Assembly (NCBI GenBank): GCA_030704615.1
Contig: CM060734.1
Span: 40,424,001 to 40,488,000 of the forward strand
Direction of reading: 5' to 3'
From: Takakia lepidozioides
Taxonomy: Eukaryota; Plantae; Bryophyta
DNA: 64,000 nt
A model generated the notes under the pieces. The model had not been told where the DNA came from. It was given only the letters and a program-made list of their open reading frames with translations, and searched no databases. Position 1 is the stretch's first letter; each line of letters starts with the position of its first letter. Positions 3,720 to 53,224 of the stretch are shown here, in pieces. The position numbers and the translations under genes were made by a program.

Positions 3720-6700
3720 ATGCCGAAGAGAGCACCCACTCTCAATACCGTGCTATTCGACAAGGAACTCGCCTTGTTGAAGAAAAGGAAACTTCCACCC
3801 ATTCTCTGCAGGGTCACTACGGATACCGCAACATATGCGGAAAAAAAAACCGACACGGTGTGGCAGCAGTCTGTACGCCTGTATGACTTCTTTGATGATG
3901 TGGATTGGAGGAAGGCGGATCTTGTGGACGTTGTCAGGACGATCACCTCCTACAAACCCGAGACAAAGACGGTGGTTTGGGAGGGCCATCCCATAGTGCT
4001 AATGGAGGAGTGCATCGCGAAGGCATTTAAGCTGCCAATGGACGGGTTCCAAGTCCCGAAACTAATCAACGATGCAAAAAATATGGGCCGTCAACCCTAT
4101 TTCCAACCGGACAAAGGGTTCGATGCAGCAAAGGGATGCTTTAACTCCGTGAATGCAAGCTCGTCGATTTGCAGGAAAAAGATGGAGGTTCTATCCGAAA
4201 TTTTGTGGTGTAAACAACCCAGGGCCAGATCCAACCGGCACTTTTACAATGCATGGTAAAGGCAGGAACAGAAAATGTAAACTGGGCGAAGGTATTGTTC
4301 CAAGGACTCCAGCGGGGAATGAAAGAGGCCAACAAGAAAAGGCCGGACAACAAAAAGACCATAACCATTCGTTGGGGCCATCTTATACAACACCTCATCA
4401 AGCACTGGAGGGATATGACACCATATGAGCTAGCAGGTATGGGGACCCAACTCGGGGCGGACATATCGGACTACCAAGAAACCGGCGAGCCGAACGATAG
4501 CGAGGACACCCAGAGCGTGCGAAGCGGGGCCGATGCACAAGAAGTTTCACCTGCAGTCATGGTACCCCCCAGCGTGGTGGAGCAAATGTAGGGGATCGAA
4601 CTGTCAGCCCCGAGTTCGTGGGGAGGGATGCCCCTCTCCAAATCTCTCGCAATGGGACCCGGACAGGCACCCACGGAACAGGGTGAGATATCCATTGACC
4701 GTTTTTTACGGGACGTCGAGGTCCCTCATTTTGAGAAAGTTAGGTTTGAGGGAGGATCCCCAGACTCGCAGGGACGACTCAAATTCCTACGGGGAGAGGA
4801 TACTGACGGCCACGGAGGTCGATGAAATGGAGTACCCTGAAGGCGGCGAGGAAGCACGGGAACCAAGGAGCCCACAACAGCAAGTGGAGGTGGCAAAGTT
4901 AAACGCTTTTGCGGTCTGGCCGCAAGACTTCCAAAACGACATGATGGCGCTGAAGCGATATACGACCCACGTGGAGCAGCTGCAGTAAGCCCACAAACTA
5001 CTCCGCGAGGATTATGAGAAACTGGGAAAGGAAAACAAAGACAGGCAGGAGCACGAGAAGCGTAGCGAGGATAGTCAGCGGCAGCTGGAGGAGACACAAG
5101 AGAGGCTCATACAAGTGACCCAACAGGCGACGGGACATAAGACCCATGTGGAGCAGCTGCAGTCAGCCCTCAAACTACTCCGCGAGGATTATGAGAAACT
5201 GGGAAGGGAAAACAATGACCTGGAACGAGACATGCAAGAGCACAAGAAGCGTAACGAGGATAGTTAGCGGCAGCTGGAGGAGACACAAGAGAGGCTCACA
5301 CAAGCTACCGAACAGGCGACGGGACATAAGACCCACGTGGAGCAGCTGCAATCAGCCCTCAAACTACTCCGCGAGCATTATGAGAAACTAGGAAGGGAAA
5401 ACAAGGACCTGGAACGAGACAAGCAGGAGCGCAAGAAGCGTAGCAAGCGTATCACTGCATATAGTCCAACGCGCACTGGAGAGACACAAGAGATGGCCAG
5501 GCAAGCGACCGAACAGACGACGGAGAAAGTGCTCCAATAGAAGAAGACGACGGACAAGCTCAAATTCGAGTTGGAGGAAACGGAAATTAAGAGGGGCCCG
5601 TGGTCCATTGGACGAAAAACAGAATTATTGATCATCTACCCGGCACCAGATGACCTCCCTACAGGAAGAATTGTAGGAGAGGAGGGGTCGGCTGGAGTAA
5701 AAAGAGAAAGTGCTGACGTTAGCTCGAGAGGATTCGTTGGCCTTCGAACGAAAGTACCAATCCAAAAGGGCTGAATGGAAGAGAGTAGTACTCAAGGCTA
5801 AGGAGGTGTATCGAGGCCTGCGGAGATCCAACAATGCAGTGGCCATTCTGAAAAGGGACATGATGCACTGGGAAACTCGGAGGGCATTGGTTCGTCATGA
5901 TTTTTGTGTAAACTTGCGGAGCATAAGGCCAAGGCGATCGCAACAAAGGCTGGCCATAGGGGGTGAGTGGCATAACCAAAGCTACACGAGTTGCGTGAGG
6001 AATTCAAAGAGTGGGCCAGAGATTATCTGGACACGACAACCTCGGAGACCCTGCAGTCAAATTGGAGAAGGAGCCATAGAGCAGGAGAGACAGTCTGGGC
6101 CGGAGGCCGCTCAGGGAATCTTGGGGAAGCTCGACAGGCTGTAGGCAATGGACACTTTTGCTATCTTGGAAACTGAGAGACGCATCACCCCCTACTTGGA
6201 ACTTGGATCAATTCCACTCCCACTATCAAGTGGTTTTATGACCTGGCGCGTCACTAGGGGCCGGTGGCCGCAACGCAACGCTTCCGGGTCTCCGGAATGC
6301 CACTTCATCGCAAGAAAGGAGGGGACCACAATGTCTCCTGATGCCGCTCTCCTGCCGTTGCTCCCTGAGCACCAATGCTGGAAGGAATCAGACGCCCGGT
6401 ATCGGAGGTACCTTTGCTTTCCCCCACTTTTATTGATCACATTGACACGTTAGGATTACCCGACGATGCCTACGAAAGGTATTTATCCCCCAACCAGTAC
6501 CTCGTAGCCCTGGAGACTCTGCTCTGCTGCGATGCCCGTGCCCAAAGCACTAGAGGGGCAATCCTGGCCCTGAGAACGATTATCCTGACCCGCCATCAGT
6601 TGGCGATACCACCACAACGAGAGGTATGGACGGCGGGGTCTTTGACGCATATTGGCGCAAGCGACTCGAGCTACCCTACGACGATATCTTACGGCATTCA

Positions 6701-7036
6701 AACTAGCGGTAGGGACATACGACTCCAAGAACTGTCCAGAGTACGTGGCAAAAATCGACGCCAGTACAGGTGCATACAGCAATACGTTTATACGGTTCTA
6801 CAGGGTGCATACAGCATTACGTATTACGGTTCTACTACCTGATGGAGGTGAGATACGAGCAGCTATGTAGGCACACAGCCACCTGCCCAAAACCTCTAAG
6901 TATGATTTTGACCCCCTCCAGCAAGCACGGCAACAATACACGGAAACTGCTACGGGAAGAAGCGGCATGGTCATCCACCCATCACAAGGCCCTCATCGAG
7001 CTACACCAATCCTTGAAGGACGAGGCCTTGTTCTGA
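3720..7036 (+). pseudogene. Disrupted large TE-associated ORF (plant transposon accessory-protein-like N-terminus + coiled-coil repeats)
   Basis: Chain of + strand ORFs broken by stops and frameshifts (3720-4259, 4253-4591, 4628-4988, 5337-5540, 5710-6144, 6375-6870). Motifs VVWEGHPIVLMEECIAKAFKLP and VNWAKVLFQGL resemble TE accessory ORFs. No gag/pol motifs seen. Confidence 0.5.
4965..5450 (+). repeat. In-frame tandem repeat (~2.6 copies; periods 177 and 189 bp) encoding a coiled coil
   Basis: ACCCA(C/T)GTGGAGCAGCTGCA starts at 4965, 5142 and 5331. Unit translates as THVEQLQSALKLLREDYEKLGREN...RQLEETQERL.Q.T.QATGHK. Confidence 0.9.
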
Positions 7037-8394
7037 CGAGGGAAGTCCTGCCTGGCTCGTAGGCTCAAAAGGACCCAGGCCCCGCCTACGTACCCTACCC
7101 TCCTAGGAGCGACGGAAACATCGTTTAACGAGGCTAGATGCCGAGTCAAACGAAGGGTGAGAAAGGAGCTGATAGGCGAGCTCCACACCTCGCTCCGCCA
7201 CTGGATACAAACGGCCCTGCCTCTGAGACTGAAACCCATGGCGGCATTACGGTACCTACCGACCTGGACAGGGGAATGGACGAAGATGAGCGCAACGCCT
7301 CGGATGACAGCGAAGAGGAGTGCCTCCCGCTACCCCATGAAACCACTCAAAGTAGCTCAGAAAGTGGGTCTAGTCGTAGTAGAGCCTCACGAAGATGGCA
7401 AAGAAGCCGTCCATGAGGACATGGACGAATGTAAGACTAAAAATTTGACCCTCTGCACACTTGCGCACGTGGGAGGGAGGGAAACACCGAGGACGTCGGC
7501 ACAATCAGAGCCGGAGGCCTCACTGGAAAGTTCCACTCCTGGAGGGCGGGAGGGCATAAAGGAGACGACAGTTGCATTGGAAAGGAAAGTAGACAACCCA
7601 GCTCAACCACAAAGAGCGAGGGTTGAGTCAGTGGCTGGCCAGAAGCGCTCACCATCACCACTGCCAAAAGCAGAGGTGAAAAAGAAAGCAATTGTGAAGG
7701 AAGACACATCTGGAGTGTACATGAGTGCTGACCAGAAGGTCTGTTTCGAAGTAGAGAAGGAAGTTGCAGCACTCCGTGAATCGCACGAGTAAGTGAATAT
7801 CGTGACGTTGGTCTGCCAGCACTGGGTTTGCCAGTCAAATGTTCTGGCAGTGAAGGGTCTTTTGAGTCTTATCGGTTTATGCTAGCGACTGTTTTCAGGT
7901 CTATAAGTCCGGTCTGCCATGTTCGATCTGCCGGCCTGTTCTTGGGTCTAACAGTTCAGTCATTCAGTCCGCCAGTACGGGTTGCAGGGTCTGCTGTGTG
8001 CCAGGATCTGGATGTGTTCGGGGGTTTGTTGTCTATGAACAAGTATGTGTTTTTCTATGAAAGGCCTTTAAAATAGTTTTGTTTTAAAAAAAAACATTAT
8101 TATGTTTTTCCACACCTTCTCGGTCTGCCATCACGGTCCTATCGTGGTCTGCATGGTCCACTGATATGCTGTTCGTCTGAAAGGGTTTCTTCCGAGTTTG
8201 TGCAGGTTCTCATCCCGATTTCGCTCCACTTTCAACACACATATCTCAAATGGAAAGGTAATGCTGTACTTTTTGAAAACGACCCAGCGTTTGAGTGCAG
8301 TATTGACATCAACGACCTGAAAGCCTTAGAGAAATAGGAATCCGAGGCTACAGACCGATTGCTTGAATTGTGGTGTATGTTCTATCAGAAGGAT

Positions 8395-9572
8395 TGTAGA
8401 ATAAAACTATAATCAACCCTAAAGAAAAGGATCAATCAGTCTAGAGTTAGTTCGCTAGGGAAAGCACTATACGACTATAACATAATGATGCCCTGTTATT
8501 CTATTTCTCTTTATTCTCCCCTCTGAAAACGTTCTACCATTACTTATCTCAATCTATAGCAACTAAGATCCTACCAGTTTCAATAATACCCCCTCCACTC
8601 TCTATCAACTCTATCCCATTATATGAGATCAAATACCATTGCTCATCTACTACTCTTCTCCAGTAATCTATCTGATACAAGACCAATAGCTCTCGATACC
8701 ATCATTTATTCACCAACCATAAATTGATTATCTCTTTGTCACTACATTGCAGTCTTTTAAAGATATCTAGCGACAAACTATTAGGTAGACCAGTAATTAA
8801 TTCTACAGGATATGCTATCCGTTCTTTTCCACACATCACTATCGATCACTTTTTACCACCAAGTTTGTTTCTTCAGTTGCTCCAGGGATTTTCCTTCACC
8901 AAAATTATGATTCCATTCTCTCATAAGTTCAGGATAGCCTTCAAATGGTCTATACCACTTCTACAACCAACTGTGCTTCCAATAACAACTCCTGTATAGA
9001 ATGGATATCTCTCTATACCATCCTCTATTGACTAATTGCAATAAAAATACTTCTTTATCGCTACAACAAGGCTTCTGAAAGATTATTATCGATAAATGAT
9101 CTGGTAATCCAGTGATCAACTCTGATACTTCTTTTATTCCTCATCATTGTTTTCTGCCATGCAAATGATTTTACTTCACTGTTGTACTCCTACCATTAAT
9201 CCAATTGAAGATGCTCTATCTTCGTTTCCTTAATCTGCTCCTTCTTGAACTCTGGATATCCATCTATCGATATTTCTCTTGGTAGACCAGAAACTAATTC
9301 TCACACCGAATTCTTATCTTCTTCATTTGTGCACATTCTCACCATCTCACATAATTATGGTTCTTCAATTCTTTCACACAGAATCACATTCTCATTCCAT
9401 CACTCCATTCTTCACATATACACAAAGTGAATTGCATTTTTTTTTCTTCTCTTTTTTCTCTTCTATTCATTCATAAATCACAACATTGCAAGAACGCAAT
9501 ACTAAATCTACCATTGAAGAATAACTCTATAGTCTATCTCCTACTCACTCTACTCTCCCTACTCCGGTCACA
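8395..9572 (-). repeat. 3' LTR
   Basis: Direct repeat of 11752-12926; on + strand begins TGTAGAATAAAACTAT and ends CCGGTCACA. Confidence 0.9.
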
Positions 9573-10734
9573 TCTAATGGCCAAATTATAAAGTAATGAC
9601 GCTAGATGCTCATTCTCCCGCCATTGACCACGACGAGAGCACATACATACACCAAATCGGCCTGTAATATTCCGTGGCCATGGTCCAGTGATTGGTGTTA
9701 ATCGAGTGCCCATCTTCAAAATCGATTCTCCCGTTGCAGTATGGCCATAGTCCTGCCTTATCCATAACAACACTTCCCAACATGGCAACACCTTATCGTC
9801 AGAATCCGCATAGACCTTCTCCGGCCGGCCCAAAAACTCTGAGTACTCCCAGTTAGTAGGAAAGTGACATCATTCGAATATCGCGAACCCCACCTGAGAG
9901 ACTTGAGTAGCACTAGGTTGATTGATGTACAAATCCTCCATCCATTTGGCGGTCAATAACTCTGGCCAGGTTTTTGCCTTCATCCCCCTGCTTACCCTTT
10001 GCTGAATTGCAGTCTGTGTCCAGACATAAGCAGATCCATGTAAACACTCCGGAACTAGTCTATACCTACGATGAGCTCTCTCCAACATTGTATGAGACTG
10101 GGTCTCGTCCAACACTTGAGCCACCAGATGTTGCACCATATCTAGGTAGCTTGGCAACAATTTGTCATCTAGCCTCGGAATAGTAGAGAGAAAACCATAA
10201 GCATGGACTCGATTCCATTGCCTATCCCGGAGGTGAGATTGTCGAAACGCTTCTAGTCTATCCTCCAATTGTTTATAATACAAAAAACAGCGACAGGCAG
10301 GATCTCCAACAGTAAACAAAAACTGCTCCGGGTGGGCGACTGCCACGTCTCCCCTTACCACCATCTCCACGGTCAAATTCTCCATGCGATAGTTGCACAT
10401 GTCTTCCCACTCTTCTTCCAAATCAATCGGCTCCTCTCCGCCATTGAAAAGCAATTTCAAAAGAGTATTGTCATACAAGTATCCTTGACTAAGGCTCTGA
10501 GTATAGCACACCTCATGCCATCCCTGCAAAACACTGAGTCCAACCATTTCTGTAGGTCTTATCATCTCTCTGAACTGTTCCAACTCAGACATTTGTGCCT
10601 TCATGGTCTGCTCTGTCACATTCATCTCCCCTTCCTGCTCAATGCGATAAGAAACAAATTCGTGCTGCAAGGCTACATATCGTTCATCAGGATTGTTTAT
10701 GGTTGCAGGTTGTTTCCCCATCTCCGCTACCTGA
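9573..10734 (-). pseudogene. Accessory ORF of unknown function fused in frame to the truncated gag
   Basis: ORFs 9870-10829 and 9534-9833 are in the same frame, separated by one stop. No pol motifs; the frame runs straight into the 3' LTR. Confidence 0.55.
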
Positions 10735-11600
10735 ATATCCTCTAGGCGACCTGCAAATGAATCGACCGACTCGCCTTTCACCATATGGAGTTTTGTCAAT
10801 TGCTCCCATAGACGATCGGTAAAACCCAAGGGTCGAAACTATGTACGTTAGGAAAGCTGTTTTTAAGGAATTCCAATCAGGAAATACTCCATGCTATTGC
10901 CGATGATACCATTGGAATGCTAACTCCCGCAAAGTGGCAGGGAACATCGTCAACCAACAGAATTCCGTCCTGGCGTTATTAGCAATACAAGCTGTCATGA
11001 ATTGAGCCAAATGGCAGTCGGGATCTGACCCTTGCAGCCCCATAAACTGTGGCATGGGCGATACATTAACAGTTCGATCGTTAGGCGTTCCCACATCCAC
11101 CACCACCGGAATTGATTGGAGAGCGACCGCAATTGGTACTGTCGCCATGGTGCCATTGGTGCTAGTACAATAGGTGGTACAACAGGTGGTGCAAGGAATG
11201 CAATAGGGGCACGATAGGTGGTGCCGATGCAGCTGCCTGTGCGGCCAATAATGCTCGTCGTGCTATCCGAACTGCCAATCGATTGGATCTGGCTTTAGCC
11301 TTATGTTCCGCGGTTACGGAAGATTCCCTCATTCCCCATAAACCCTTCTTCTTAATTGACAAAACAAGGTGATCTCCTCGATTCCTTGCAACAGTCAATT
11401 CAAGTGTTCTCGACGTCCTCTCTTGTTCAGGCGATAGTTGAATCTGCTCCTCCTGCGCTATCGCCAGAGCTAGCATCTCCACTTTTTGTTGACTTAGGAC
11501 AGGGAGGCTCAACCGTCTCCCGCGCCTTCTTCTTACTCCAAAAACATTCCGGGATCTCCGCCTTCTTATGCTGCTTACGTAAACTACAATAAGGGCATAG
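10735..11600 (-). pseudogene. Truncated retrotransposon gag
   Basis: PQFMGLQGSDPDCHLAQF...FPATLRELAFQWY...DWNSLKK...LHMVKGESVDSFAGRL follows the Retrotrans_gag pattern, with stops and a frameshift. Confidence 0.8.
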
Positions 11601-11727
11601 TTTGAAACTAGGTGAGGAAACCTTACTATTACGAATGACTTCCCTTGTCATCTCATAATCATTCAACAGAAAGTAATTGTCTTGAAATTTTTAGTAAAGC
11701 ATCACTATAGCAAACCGCATCATCTTT

Positions 11728-11745
11728 TCCCCGGCAGCGGCGCCA
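11728..11745 (-). promoter_or_regulatory. Primer-binding site (tRNA-Asp type)
   Basis: Minus strand TGGCGCCGCTGCCGGGGA, 6 nt after the LTR end, is one mismatch from the Athila-type PBS TGGCGCCGTTGCCGGGGA. Confidence 0.85.
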
Positions 11746-11751
11746 AAAAGA

Positions 11752-12926
11752 TGAGAATAAAACTATAATCAACCCTAAAGAAAAAGATCAATCAGTCTAG
11801 AGTTCGTTCGCTGGGGAAAGCACTATACGACTATAACATAATGATGCCCTGTTATTCTATTTCTCTTCATTCTCCCTCTGAAAACGTTCTACCATTACTT
11901 ATCTCAATCTATAGCAACTAAGATCCTACCAATTTCAATGATACCTCCTCTACTCTCTATCAACTCTATCCCATTATATGAGATCAAATACCATTGCTCA
12001 TCTACTACTCTTCTCCAGTAATCTATCTGATACAAGATCAATAGCTCTCGATACCATCCTTTATTCACCAACCATAAATTGATTATCTCTTTGTCACCAC
12101 ATTGCAGTCTTTTAAAGATATCTAGCGACAAACTATTAGGTAGACCAGTAATTAATTCTACAGGATATGCTATCCGTTCTTTTCCACACATCACTATCGA
12201 TCACTTTTTACCACCAAGTTTGTTTCTTCAGTTGCTCCAGGGATTTTCCTTCACCAAAATTATGATTCCATTCTCTCATAAGTTCAGGATAGCCTTCAAA
12301 TGGTCTATACCACTTCTACAACCAACTGTGCTTCCAATAACAACTCCTGTATAGAATGGATATCTCTCTATACCATCCTCTATTGACTAATTGCAATAAG
12401 AATACTTCTTTATCGCTACAACAAAGCTTCTGAAAGATTATTATCGATAAATGATCTGGTAATCCAGTGATCAACTCTGATATTTCTTTTATTCCTCATC
12501 ATTGCTTTCTGCCATGCAAATGATTTTACTTCACTGTTGTACTCCTACCATTAATCCAATTGAAGATGCTCTATCTTCGTTTCCTTAATCTGCTCCTTCT
12601 TGAACTCTGGATATCCATCTATCGATATTTCTCTTGGTAGACCAGAAACTAATTCTCATACCGAATTCTTATCTTCTTCATTTGTGCACATTCTCACCAT
12701 CTCACATAATTATGGTTCTTCAATTCTTTCACACAGAATCACATTCTCATTCCATCACTCCATTCTTCACATATACACAAAGTGAAATGCATTTTTTTTT
12801 TTCTCTTTTTTCTTTTCTATTCATTCATAAATCACAACATTGCAAGAACGCAATACTAAATCTACCATTGAAGAATAACTCTATAGTCTATCTCCTACTC
12901 ACTCTACTCTCCCTACTCCGGTCACA
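11752..12926 (-). repeat. 5' LTR
   Basis: Direct repeat of 8395-9572; the PBS follows it on the minus strand. Confidence 0.9.
11904..12191 (-). CDS. Small F-box-like ORF inside the 5' LTR (95 aa from ATG)
   Basis: MCGKERIAYPVELITGLPNSLSLDIFKRLQCGDKEIINLWLVNKGWYREL fits the plant F-box pattern LIxGLPxxLxxxIFxRL...LxLVxKxWxxxL. The 3' LTR copy has G->stop in NKGW. Confidence 0.55.
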   Translation of the reverse strand: MCGKERIAYPVELITGLPNSLSLDIFKRLQCGDKEIINLWLVNKGWYRELLILYQIDYWRRVVDEQWYLISYNGIELIESRGGIIEIGRILVAID

Positions 12927-14849
12927 ACTCTTTGGCTCAATTGACCCCGTCTGCTTCACATAAACGTAATATATAGCAGAGCGCTCCAACAACTGTAATA
13001 ACCGCTCAAACTCCTTCATCCATCATTTACAATTATTTATCCATTTCTTCTATCATCTAGTCCATGATAGACTATCGGCTGCATACAGGATATCAAAGAA
13101 CACTGCTCTATCGCAACAATATCAAAGGTATCGCAGAATATGTCAATGATAAAGATATTAAAAAGTTCTTAAAATTGTCACTGAGTCAGAAATTCCTATT
13201 ATTCTACAAGGATCTCGATGTGAAGACATATAATGATGTTGCTATTTTGCCGACGTGGATTTGGAGTCTAGTGAACATTCACTGGAGTTCAAGCCAGGAA
13301 CAGGTTCGCTCGCAGGTGGAGCACTTACTGACCGTGTAGCGTATAGGCAAAGACCTGAAGACCTGCAAGTACATACTGGTACCAATAGTTGAAGGGTAAG
13401 TGTCCTACGTTTCGACTGTGTATCTACCTTGGATGGGTCTGCCTACATTGCTCTACAGTCATTGGTCTACAACATTGGTACTTGGCATTGTCTTGTGTCT
13501 GTCAAATCATTTTACAGCTTGTTTGGAAAGCTGATGCGTCGCGTAGTGTGTCAGATGTCATTGGAGTCTGGTGATTGTTGACCAGGTGCGCCATGTGTTC
13601 ATTCATCTAAACTCAATGAAGAAATTTCACAAAAATGTGGACATACAACCATGGGTTCGAATTGTGTATGGACAATGTCTCGGCTTAAAGCACATGACCC
13701 CGGAGTGGAACAAGGCCACTTCATTCAAGTTTAATGTCCCTGAAGTGCCGCAACAACCCTTTTCGTGGGAATGTGACTTTTACATCATGTCATTTATCAA
13801 GGGGTTCTGTGACTGGTTGAAGGGCGACTGTGGCGGAACATTTAGAAAGAGAGGAAAGCCTTTTACCTCAGAGTGGTTTACATTCCGCTATGCTTGCAGG
13901 CAACGCTTAAAGTGTGTTGAGTACATTTTGAAGGCACTTAGTACTATGGAGAATGTAGCAGTAGAGAGGCAATTGTCATCGGACAGAGTCTTCTGATGTC
14001 CGGGTTATTTCTTCTAGGCCTGGCAATAAATGAAAGACATGTCCTTTGCTTCGTCTTCTCTCTCTCTCTCAACGTGGCTGAATCTGTCGAAGCCTGAAAT
14101 CAGACCAACATATACATTGCTCTAATCCTTTGGAGGCTCAATAACTTCATGATCCCGGTCATATATGCTTAGTTGTGGTGGAAGAGATCATGGATGAGTG
14201 GCAACAAATTACTAGAACAACTACGCTATATTACAGCTTTAATATTATGGGATAGTAACTGGTCCATGCACAACAGTCCGAGCTATATGTGTGATGAAAG
14301 ATACAGTCCATGACATGTTATTTCAAGCAACATTCCATGCACAACAGTCAACAACATTTCCTGTCATGGGTATTGACACGCCCTGAGTAATGCCCCACTA
14401 GTCACACAAGACAAAGCATTTTAGCTATGAGACACTTAATTACAGGAACAAGAATGCACCAGCAAGGACATGCTCCACATTCGCTTCTGCTCTCTGAGGG
14501 CCCAAAGCTCAACAGCCATGTGCTTGCTCAAACAAACGCCCTCCTCTGCATTTGCGCCAAAGTGTTTGGATAGACTCTCCAGTAAAAAATATGGCCCAAA
14601 GTGACAGACCAGTCAAGTGTAGACTGCTAACAGACCTGAAAAGCAAGCTCACAGGTACTAAGAAACTTCCACTGCGGTTGTGCAGAGATGAGTATCATAA
14701 ACCATGAAGTGAAGAAATTCTTCAGTTCTGAAAATCCATAAACAGTGGACTAAATTTGGTAAATGATCAAATCATATAAAACGCCTGATTCATTTTATTT
14801 GGGCAGCTGTAGGAAATTGGACTAATGGACAAAAATAGCTTTCTTCTGA

Positions 14850-39412: not shown

Positions 39413-41276
<1,864 letters not shown>

Positions 41277-51601: not shown

Positions 51602-52882
51602 TCATATCCAATCTCTCTCTTGGAGTTTGAGTGGAAGGTAAACCTCAGACAGATACTGGAATCCAAACGAACTTAAAGCTTGAATCTCAGCTTTCTCCTT
51701 GGTCTTCACCATGAGTTCCAGCTCCTTAACCCAGTTCTGATCCTTCGTTATGAAATCCTCTTCAAGCAAGTCTTTCCCTGTCTTTATATCCTGATCGGTC
51801 ATAGGCAGCCGGCATTGCTCAGGAATTTTGTACTTGTTGAGATCGGACGGCCGAACTCCTAACCATTTGATGTCTGGTGTTGTGAGATTGGAACTATCAT
51901 AGGACATGTTTTTAGATCCACTCATGTACACAGACAGGATCTTCAGTCCATAGGGATCACTGTCCACCAAACCCAGCACAGGTAGCTTCAAATCCGTCTT
52001 CATCTTCTTCAGAAACAGCCGGGTGGCAACGTCAGGCTGCCCTTTGGCTGTGATGATGACACAAGGAAATCTATTGTAAAACCTATCCTCCGCAAGTCGC
52101 ATGAATGCAGCATCTTTTTCTACGAGAAGAATGAAAAGAGCATCACTCTCCATGCCCTGAACCTTGTCGACATTGGGAGGAATGGCTTTTCCACCAACTC
52201 CCATTTTTGTGCAATCGATTCTGTCCCCATCTTCTGTGAAAAAAAGCCTCCCTACCACGACTCCCTTCTCTGAAGCAACCACATTCAAGCTTGATCTTGT
52301 GCACCCCAGCATGCAAGAAACATCATCCAGAACAATATCTGACTGCCCCTGATCCTGAAAGAGTTTAACATCAGTGTAGAAAAGATCTCGTTTAGTCACA
52401 TGTATCTGCTTTGTGCAAAGTTGGTGAACGAGCTGTAGGATCCGTGTCGTGATGGCTGTCTTCCTTACACTGGATATGTTAGCAAACTGACGAAAGGATG
52501 CCTTATCCTTGAGGACAATGCGGTCCAGCTCAGGAACATAGAGCTGATTAGCACTGCTCCTAGAAGGTATGGCGTAGCCAAAGCCATTACCTTCCAAAAT
52601 CGATTTGGCAACGCTCAAAATATTCTTCTCTATCTCGAAGATCACACTGCTGGTATTAAGATCCACCACCTCTTTGCAGGCATGCGCGAGGTGCAAGTCT
52701 GCGAGGGTTCTGGTCTCAGGCTTGGAGTCATGAGCAGTTTGTGAGAAATCCTTCACAGAAGCAAGTATCACAGGATCTGGTTTCAGCTTCTTCTTGAAAT
52801 TAAGTGCAGCCTGGGCCTGCGCCTTTCGAGCTTCCGGTGGCTCGTTGTCCTCGTCGTCGACAGCCCTGCGCTTGTCCGCCAT
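51602..52882 (-). CDS. TOP6A: DNA topoisomerase VI subunit A (SPO11-3/RHL2), intronless CDS, 426 aa
   Basis: [11 protein letters not shown] (catalytic Tyr), toprim LLVEKDAAF and DSDPYG, KAEIQAL; ATG at 52882 (MADKRR). Confidence 0.97.
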
Positions 52883-53224
52883 CGATGGTTTCCGCAACTG
52901 CTTCAGCTCTCCAGGGTCCTGCAGAATTTTGGAGGGAAAACAAAGAGGTTCTAACGACGATGATCGACGAAGATCTAACGTTCTATTTACACCCACAATC
53001 TTGTCTTTTTAAATCTCTTTTCTCATGATCCGAAAATAATCGACCCATTGTATGGAATGGGGCAATCATTGTCTTGTAATGTTTCCCGAGCTGGTGATTT
53101 TTCTGTCGGTGCCAAGTCGATCCGAGAAACTTGTCGAGGCTACGAAGAAACGATCGAGAGTGAAGCGCAAGGAAATGATGGTAGCTTGAGGATGGTAAAG
53201 CCAGAGAGCTGAGAGCTGGGAGCT
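52883..53224. promoter_or_regulatory. Compact divergent (bidirectional) promoter region between TOP6A and DSE1
   Basis: Only 342 bp separate the two head-to-head start codons. Confidence 0.6.

Follow-up and report, generated by a model that had tools for sequence, protein, structure and literature searches.

Both long terminal repeats (LTRs) of a retrotransposon copy in the moss Takakia lepidozioides carry a tandem array of three related units, each descended from a mini-gene whose core probably represents a divergent F-box. Comparison of two of these units gives a clear sign, read from their codons, that the encoded peptide was under purifying selection for a long period after the unit was duplicated and that this selection acted on the F-box-like core. 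The copy described here is decaying and gag-only, and it belongs to an LTR retrotransposon family present in many copies in the moss. The mini-gene in the LTRs is a credible candidate for an undescribed type of transposon accessory mini-gene, although its function is unproven.

The element occupies the minus strand of the window, the whole 64,000-nucleotide stretch of DNA that was analyzed, and its two direct repeats are the only pair found when positions 11600–13100 are compared with the window by blastn. The long terminal direct repeats with TG...CA ends that are expected of an LTR retrotransposon are present, both repeats starting with TGTGACC and ending in ...TTATTCT(A)CA. The 5′ LTR (11754–12929, minus strand) is about 1,176 bp long. 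The 3′ LTR (8398–9575, minus strand) is about 1,177 bp long and contains the same three-unit array. By blastn, the two copies are 98.2% identical, with 21 differences comprising 19 substitutions and 2 indels (~1.6%). A 17-mer that begins with TGG and resembles a primer-binding site (PBS) lies 6 nt past the terminal CA of the 5′ LTR (11729–11745, minus strand); no tRNA has been matched to it, and searches for tRNA genes and Rfam families found none in the 64-kb window.

The 2.2-kb interior contains three frameshifted ORFs, two of which resemble gag on visual inspection and in their ESM features. These two ORFs, of 84 and 319 aa, lie in different frames between 9870 and 11148 on the minus strand. 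Retrotrans_gag clusters are ESM-feature neighbors of the gag-like sequence at 0.87–0.88, which provides a lead only, and the gag-like ORFs have no Pfam match and no homologue at E ≤ 1e-3. A gag and pol pair is not found, as pol is absent from the 2.2-kb interior, and the copy is non-autonomous because it lacks pol. The element is a non-autonomous LTR retrotransposon copy that has probably undergone recombination. No target-site duplication was found, the pentamers flanking the element being different, as could result from recombination between copies or from nested repeats. Blastn finds no solo LTR of the element's family within the 64-kb window.

The surroundings of the element contain several other features. 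The flank immediately outside the 5′ LTR (12930–13050) is repetitive in the DNA sequencing runs, and one contig per run joins a similar flank to the LTR start. The element may therefore be located within a repeat that is duplicated or nested, which would fit the lack of a target-site duplication. Adjoining the 3′ LTR, positions 4001–8000 form a GC-rich block (52–54%, against ~40% around it) with a strong AT skew (0.34); it contains several ORFs of 150–240 codons without a Pfam match and may be another repeat. Elsewhere in the window, an uninterrupted 464-codon ORF at 51602–52996 (minus strand) encodes the full set of topoisomerase VI subunit A/Spo11 domains, namely TP6A_N, an all-beta domain, and Toprim (E 1e-67). 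A SPO11/TOP6A-type gene that lacks introns is unusual among land plants, and this one could be a retrocopy. A GDP-mannose 4,6-dehydratase gene at 39833–41276 (minus strand) has at least two exons about 480 bp apart, matching PF16363 positions 1–124 and 121–274, and looks like an ordinary host gene.

The three units of the 5′ LTR differ greatly in their state of preservation. Unit 1 (12557–12691, minus strand) begins with an ATG at 12691, runs into an in-frame stop ahead of its ELVSGLP motif, and has lost about 140 nt of the F-box-like core while keeping a GYPEF...IEHL tail. Unit 2 (12211–12502, minus strand) retains its F-box-like core (12477 to ~12331), with the homologous ATG at 12502 out of frame with that core; a stop follows HSWL at 12316–12318 and is in turn followed by a 34-codon tail whose frame ends at 12211. 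Unit 3 (11904–12191, minus strand) is an open, ATG-initiated ORF of 95 codons in which the F-box-like core spans approximately residues 11–60, followed by a 35-residue tail without a family match. In the 3′ LTR, unit 1 (9202–9336, minus strand) and unit 2 (8856–9147, minus strand) carry breaks identical to those of their 5′ counterparts, and unit 3 (8549–8836, minus strand) is interrupted by a nonsense codon (8702–8704), which corresponds to residue 45 and comes directly ahead of a conserved tryptophan. Five of the six units in the element are broken, which leaves unit 3 of the 5′ LTR as the sole unit open from its ATG.

Several features identify the units as copies of one segment. The ELITGLP motif occurs at 12477 in unit 2 and at 12158 in unit 3, exactly 319 bp away, and the two units share 64% nucleotide identity over 174 nt (blastn E 2e-13). 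Unit 3 matches unit 2 at E 1.3e-16 and unit 1, weakly, at E 0.02 by tblastn. The homology of units 2 and 3 is far beyond chance. A three-way DNA alignment places an ATG at the homologous position in all three units. As 319 equals 3 × 106 + 1, successive units are shifted by one frame each. The distance from the stop of the unit 2 tail to the ATG of unit 3 is only about 20 nt, and this spacing, along with the ATG kept in each unit, indicates that the ancestral unit was a whole mini-gene and that the array is a series of near-abutting mini-genes. Frames of 91 codons that cross the units on the plus strand lack an ATG and were dismissed as chance.

This organization agrees with much of an earlier note on the same DNA, which had described three related minus-strand peptides in the 5′ LTR, a 319-bp spacing of units 2 and 3, a GYPE(F/L)...(I/L)E(H/Q)L stretch common to units 1 and 2, and a repeat of the array in the 3′ LTR. 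All three peptides are where the note had placed them, the spacing is exact, the shared stretch is visible in the translations, and the array recurs in the second, nearly identical LTR. The note had further proposed that each unit carries a small F-box-like ORF; the three related units are real, but just one of them, unit 3 of the 5′ LTR, is open.

Profile searches connect units 2 and 3 to the F-box. Against 24,736 Pfam models, hmmscan returns only two families for either unit, PF12937 (F-box-like) and PF00646 (F-box), and the matches of both units cover profile positions 2–33 or 2–43 in register. Unit 3 matches PF12937 at E 6e-4 to 1e-3 (19.2–19.9 bits) and PF00646 at E 2e-3 to 5e-3 (17.0–18.4 bits), and the F-box matches of unit 2 have E-values of 1.2e-3 and 1.6e-3 (19.0 and 18.7 bits). 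All of these scores, at 17–20 bits, fall below the gathering cut-offs of 24.3 for PF12937 and 20.5 for PF00646. The unit tails have no Pfam match. Searched against PDB sequences, the unit profile and unit 3 by itself both align best with the Cdc4 F-box from yeast (1nex_B), at a non-significant E of 0.5–0.7, with an alignment that is in register from LITxLP through the terminal tryptophan; unit 2 alone has no match in the same PDB sequence search. Among the ESM-feature neighbors listed, all that are named are F-box clusters, at 0.88–0.93, which is again a lead only.

The residues shared by units 2 and 3 follow the same pattern. Invariant positions comprise L17, P18, L21, I25, F26, D33, L39, L41, and V42, a GW pair, and a later YW pair, and these are hallmark F-box positions: the L-P motif, the hydrophobic helix positions, and the conserved tryptophan. 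An AlphaFold2 model of the core alone places helices at residues 12–24, 27–37, and 40–54, after the LP motif, with low confidence (pLDDT 64). The corresponding model of the whole unit 3 ORF has a pLDDT of 50 and spurious strands and was rejected as unusable. With the low-confidence core model, Foldseek retrieves nothing from the PDB at E ≤ 0.001, and VIA-align retrieves no F-box, only generic helical bundles with Z ≤ 4.7. The units are likely to be a divergent F-box, with membership of the family unproven. The F-box identity proposed in the earlier note is thereby upheld in part: the two F-box families are the sole Pfam matches, in register and with the hallmark residues in place, but the scores lie below the gathering cut-offs and no F-box fold is recovered. 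The same holds for the comparison with PF00646 and PF12937 that the note had suggested, which gives matches to both (E 6e-4 to 5e-3) that are sub-threshold.

The strongest statement that can be made about the peptide concerns its past selection. Units 2 and 3 were compared over a core of 49 codons (147 nucleotides), in which 55 nucleotides differ (63% identity) and 30 of 49 residues agree (61%). The 55 differences are distributed as 17, 12, and 26 over the first, second, and third codon positions, and Nei-Gojobori counts give a saturated pS of 0.93 against a pN of 0.24. Read in the two shifted frames, the same alignment retains only 35% and 29% amino-acid identity and contains 4–6 stops. When the 55 differences are placed at random, 16.5 ± 2.3 residues remain identical, with a maximum of 26, against 30 observed; this number was never reached in 20,000 trials (p < 5e-5). 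A Fisher test of synonymous versus nonsynonymous changes gives p 4e-12. Nucleotide identity between the two units is 57–80% in the core and falls to 23–42%, the random level, in the tail and spacer. As the protein has been kept at 61% identity despite synonymous saturation, past purifying selection on the peptide can be concluded, and the earlier suggestion that the conserved residues hint at such selection is borne out by the substitution counts, the randomization (0 of 20,000), and the Fisher test. The pS of 0.93 exceeds the 0.75 expected at saturation, which is compatible with a pressure for nucleotide divergence between direct repeats. The selection signal could predate the entry of the array into the LTR.

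More recent changes have a different character. Between the 5′ and 3′ LTR copies, unit 3 has accumulated seven differences, of which five are nonsynonymous, including one nonsense change, and two are synonymous. Changes since insertion look like neutral decay, as expected of any single insertion, and the array in the present copy is dead or nearly so.

Sequencing data place the element in a large family. In three DNA runs from one sample, contigs cover the whole element, with 750–1,000 contigs per run at 80–99% identity. Joints in these runs pass over 94–270 bp in the interval 12166–12524, as in 12253>12510 and 12253>12524. The pile-up of contigs indicates that the family is abundant, and the joints that some versions of the LTR lack stretches of the array near unit 2.

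Relatives of the peptide are harder to find. A word-index protein search with unit 3 yields no candidate, and phmmer against 1.84 billion representative proteins yields no true relative, at a sensitivity that extends only to relatives with more than ~50% identity over so short a domain. Its lone match, P0001, a repeat protein of 4,644 aa, consists of twelve identical 3-bit matches and was discarded as an artefact. Contigs from JGI metagenomes and IMG/VR show peptide-pattern matches to the unit alignment, none of which is confirmed by tblastn. As no similar protein was found in these collections, there is no sign of a recent parent gene.

The run data speak neither for nor against transcription of the units. 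One run guessed to be RNA contributes four contigs with <90% identity to the element, none of which lies on the units and none of which covers any part of 11880–12950. This run is one of two that were guessed to be RNA, and next to none of the sampled words occur in either. Within the LTR, its contigs match only 11726–11843, a 118-nt stretch spanning the end of the LTR and the PBS-like site, in a contig whose sequence to either side is unrelated. This conserved end may also occur in a different family, one that is possibly transcribed. A motif scan identifies a single TATA-like motif in the LTR, TATATG at 12770–12775 (minus strand), upstream of all units, and this motif is a candidate promoter by inference only. 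With this sole motif ahead of the whole array, the units would fall within the transcribed leader (R/U5), a placement guessed from a single motif. Transcription from TATATG would, in this copy, put 13 ATGs ahead of the open unit 3 ORF.

Three alternative readings of the array have to be weighed against an accessory gene maintained by the element. One is that the array consists of non-coding tandem repeats of an enhancer or regulatory, U3-type kind, with the ORFs and the F-box resemblance arising by chance. Tandem repeats are common in LTRs, and an open frame of 95 codons in ~1.2 kb at 39% GC has, by rough estimate, a chance of ~0.1–0.2. Neither point accounts for the codon-position pattern, the in-frame identity of 61% against 29–35% out of frame, the randomization result (p < 5e-5), or the calibrated Pfam E-values, and this reading is strongly disfavoured, to the point of being very nearly dismissed. 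Another reading accepts selection on a transposon mini-protein that is not a functional F-box: its core would bind gag, RNA, or some other host protein, and the resemblance would be convergent or vestigial. The sub-threshold level of every F-box match is in keeping with such a protein, as are the fold searches, which give generic three-helix bundles with Z < 5. It is nonetheless improbable, in that units with only 61% identity both match, out of 24,736 models, just the two F-box profiles, and do so at identical profile positions, and the residues invariant between them are the hallmark F-box positions.

The most substantial rival is capture from the host. Here, the 5′ end of a host F-box gene (a start codon, the F-box, and ~35 codons), or a piece of a host gene or array with repeated F-boxes, would have been taken up by the LTR, with conservation acquired before capture and decay afterward. 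Plant F-box proteins have the F-box at their extreme N-terminus, as the units do, and the breakage of five of the six units, the neutral appearance of the post-insertion changes, and the presumed-RNA run, which places nothing on the units, are all what such a fragment would show. Gene capture by plant LTR elements is also well documented (PMC7264820). Against this stand the ~20 nt from stop to ATG, the identical unit boundaries, and the 319-bp period, which fit the duplication of one segment rather than three host genes. Divergence after duplication should moreover be neutral in a captured fragment, yet it is strongly non-neutral, and no parent-like protein appears among 1.84 billion representatives, a search that detects only relatives above ~50% identity. 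Capture followed by decay is judged unlikely, although less so than the two preceding readings.

The preferred explanation regards the mini-gene as an accessory gene of the transposon, kept up within the lineage of the element and with SKP1 binding as its likeliest activity, a reading we regard as about evenly balanced between right and wrong. The ancestral unit would have comprised its own ATG, about 10 residues, a three-helix F-box-like core of ~50 residues, and a brief variable tail that ended in a stop, and a unit of ~319 bp would have been triplicated into the tandem LTR array. The 319-bp period of near-abutting ORFs with identical boundaries points to one duplicated segment and makes a set of host genes unlikely. 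As such duplicates would diverge neutrally unless their product mattered, selection probably took place inside the element lineage.

At the molecular level, the F-box-like core would bind host SKP1, a subunit of SCF ubiquitin ligases, and the short tail would bring a host silencing or restriction factor to the SCF complex. Alternatively, the mini-protein would act as a decoy by titrating SKP1. Whether as a binder of SKP1, as an anti-silencing factor, or as a decoy, the mini-protein has a role that is conjecture. By analogy with known F-box hijackers, intact members of the family might express LTR-encoded F-box mini-proteins that bind SKP1 and degrade a host factor or blunt SCF activity as a form of counter-defence; the array would then have stayed diverged in nucleotide sequence and conserved in protein since identical direct repeats are lost in reverse transcription. 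This full scenario we consider doubtful.

To our knowledge, very few plant transposons carry counter-defence genes of their own, with VANC as the textbook case. Hijacking of SCF by F-box proteins is known in viruses and bacteria; no report of such hijacking by retrotransposons was found in the literature, and a full-text literature search returned no description of F-box ORFs inside LTRs. If a selected F-box-like array in LTRs is confirmed, it would constitute a new class of transposon accessory gene and offer a handle on the persistence of a high-copy family in a bryophyte genome. Solo LTRs would then copy the ORFs as well, leaving potential SKP1-binding micro-ORFs scattered genome-wide. If capture and decay is the true history, the array would be a clean but ordinary case of LTR-internal gene-fragment capture and triplication.

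Among known systems, the closest functional parallels are the polerovirus P0, nanovirus Clink, and Agrobacterium VirF proteins, F-box or F-box-like hijackers of SCF with measured SKP1 binding and known targets. Like these, the unit peptide is a small protein of a genomic parasite with an F-box-like motif as its main recognizable feature, and by analogy it may act through SKP1. The known hijackers are encoded by viruses or a bacterium, whereas the carrier here is the LTR of an endogenous retrotransposon. VANC, encoded by the VANDAL (Mutator) transposons of Arabidopsis, is an anti-silencing protein that causes DNA-sequence-specific loss of methylation, and it provides a precedent for a plant transposon with its own accessory gene against host silencing. 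It differs in belonging to a DNA transposon, in its unrelated sequence, and in not acting via SCF. ORFs inside LTRs are known from retroviruses, in which MMTV sag lies in U3 and HIV nef overlaps U3. As in the moss element, coding sequence within the LTR is duplicated at both ends of the provirus; in contrast to it, the carriers are retroviruses of animals, their single ORF is expressed by splicing or from LTR-internal promoters, and their proteins are unrelated.

Plant LTR retrotransposons themselves offer two further comparisons. The additional ORFs (aORFs) described for these elements, such as Ogre ORF1, the antisense ORFs of Retand/Tat, and the env-like ORFs of Sireviruses, are located in the internal region, and F-boxes are unmentioned in a review of them (PMC7264820). 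They resemble the units as coding capacity beyond gag-pol on a plant LTR family without a close host homologue. However, aORFs lie outside the LTRs, either in the interval from the LTR to gag or downstream of pol, ahead of the 3′ LTR, and are single and often antisense, whereas all three units lie within the LTR, in sense orientation and in tandem, and are F-box-like. Captured gene fragments, known from maize Bs1 and from surveys of rice and sorghum (cited in PMC7264820), show how a fragment with an N-terminal host-type domain can come to reside in a retroelement and offer a plausible origin of the unit. Such captures are usually internal, single, and decaying neutrally, in contrast to units that are triplicated in the LTR with saturated dS and low dN. 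F-box genes that have captured transposase domains, together with Helitron-borne regulation, represent the reverse situation (PMC12062965). The array is best placed as a variant of the accessory or captured ORFs of transposons rather than as an established F-box effector, and its likeness to the viral F-box hijackers is one of analogy only.
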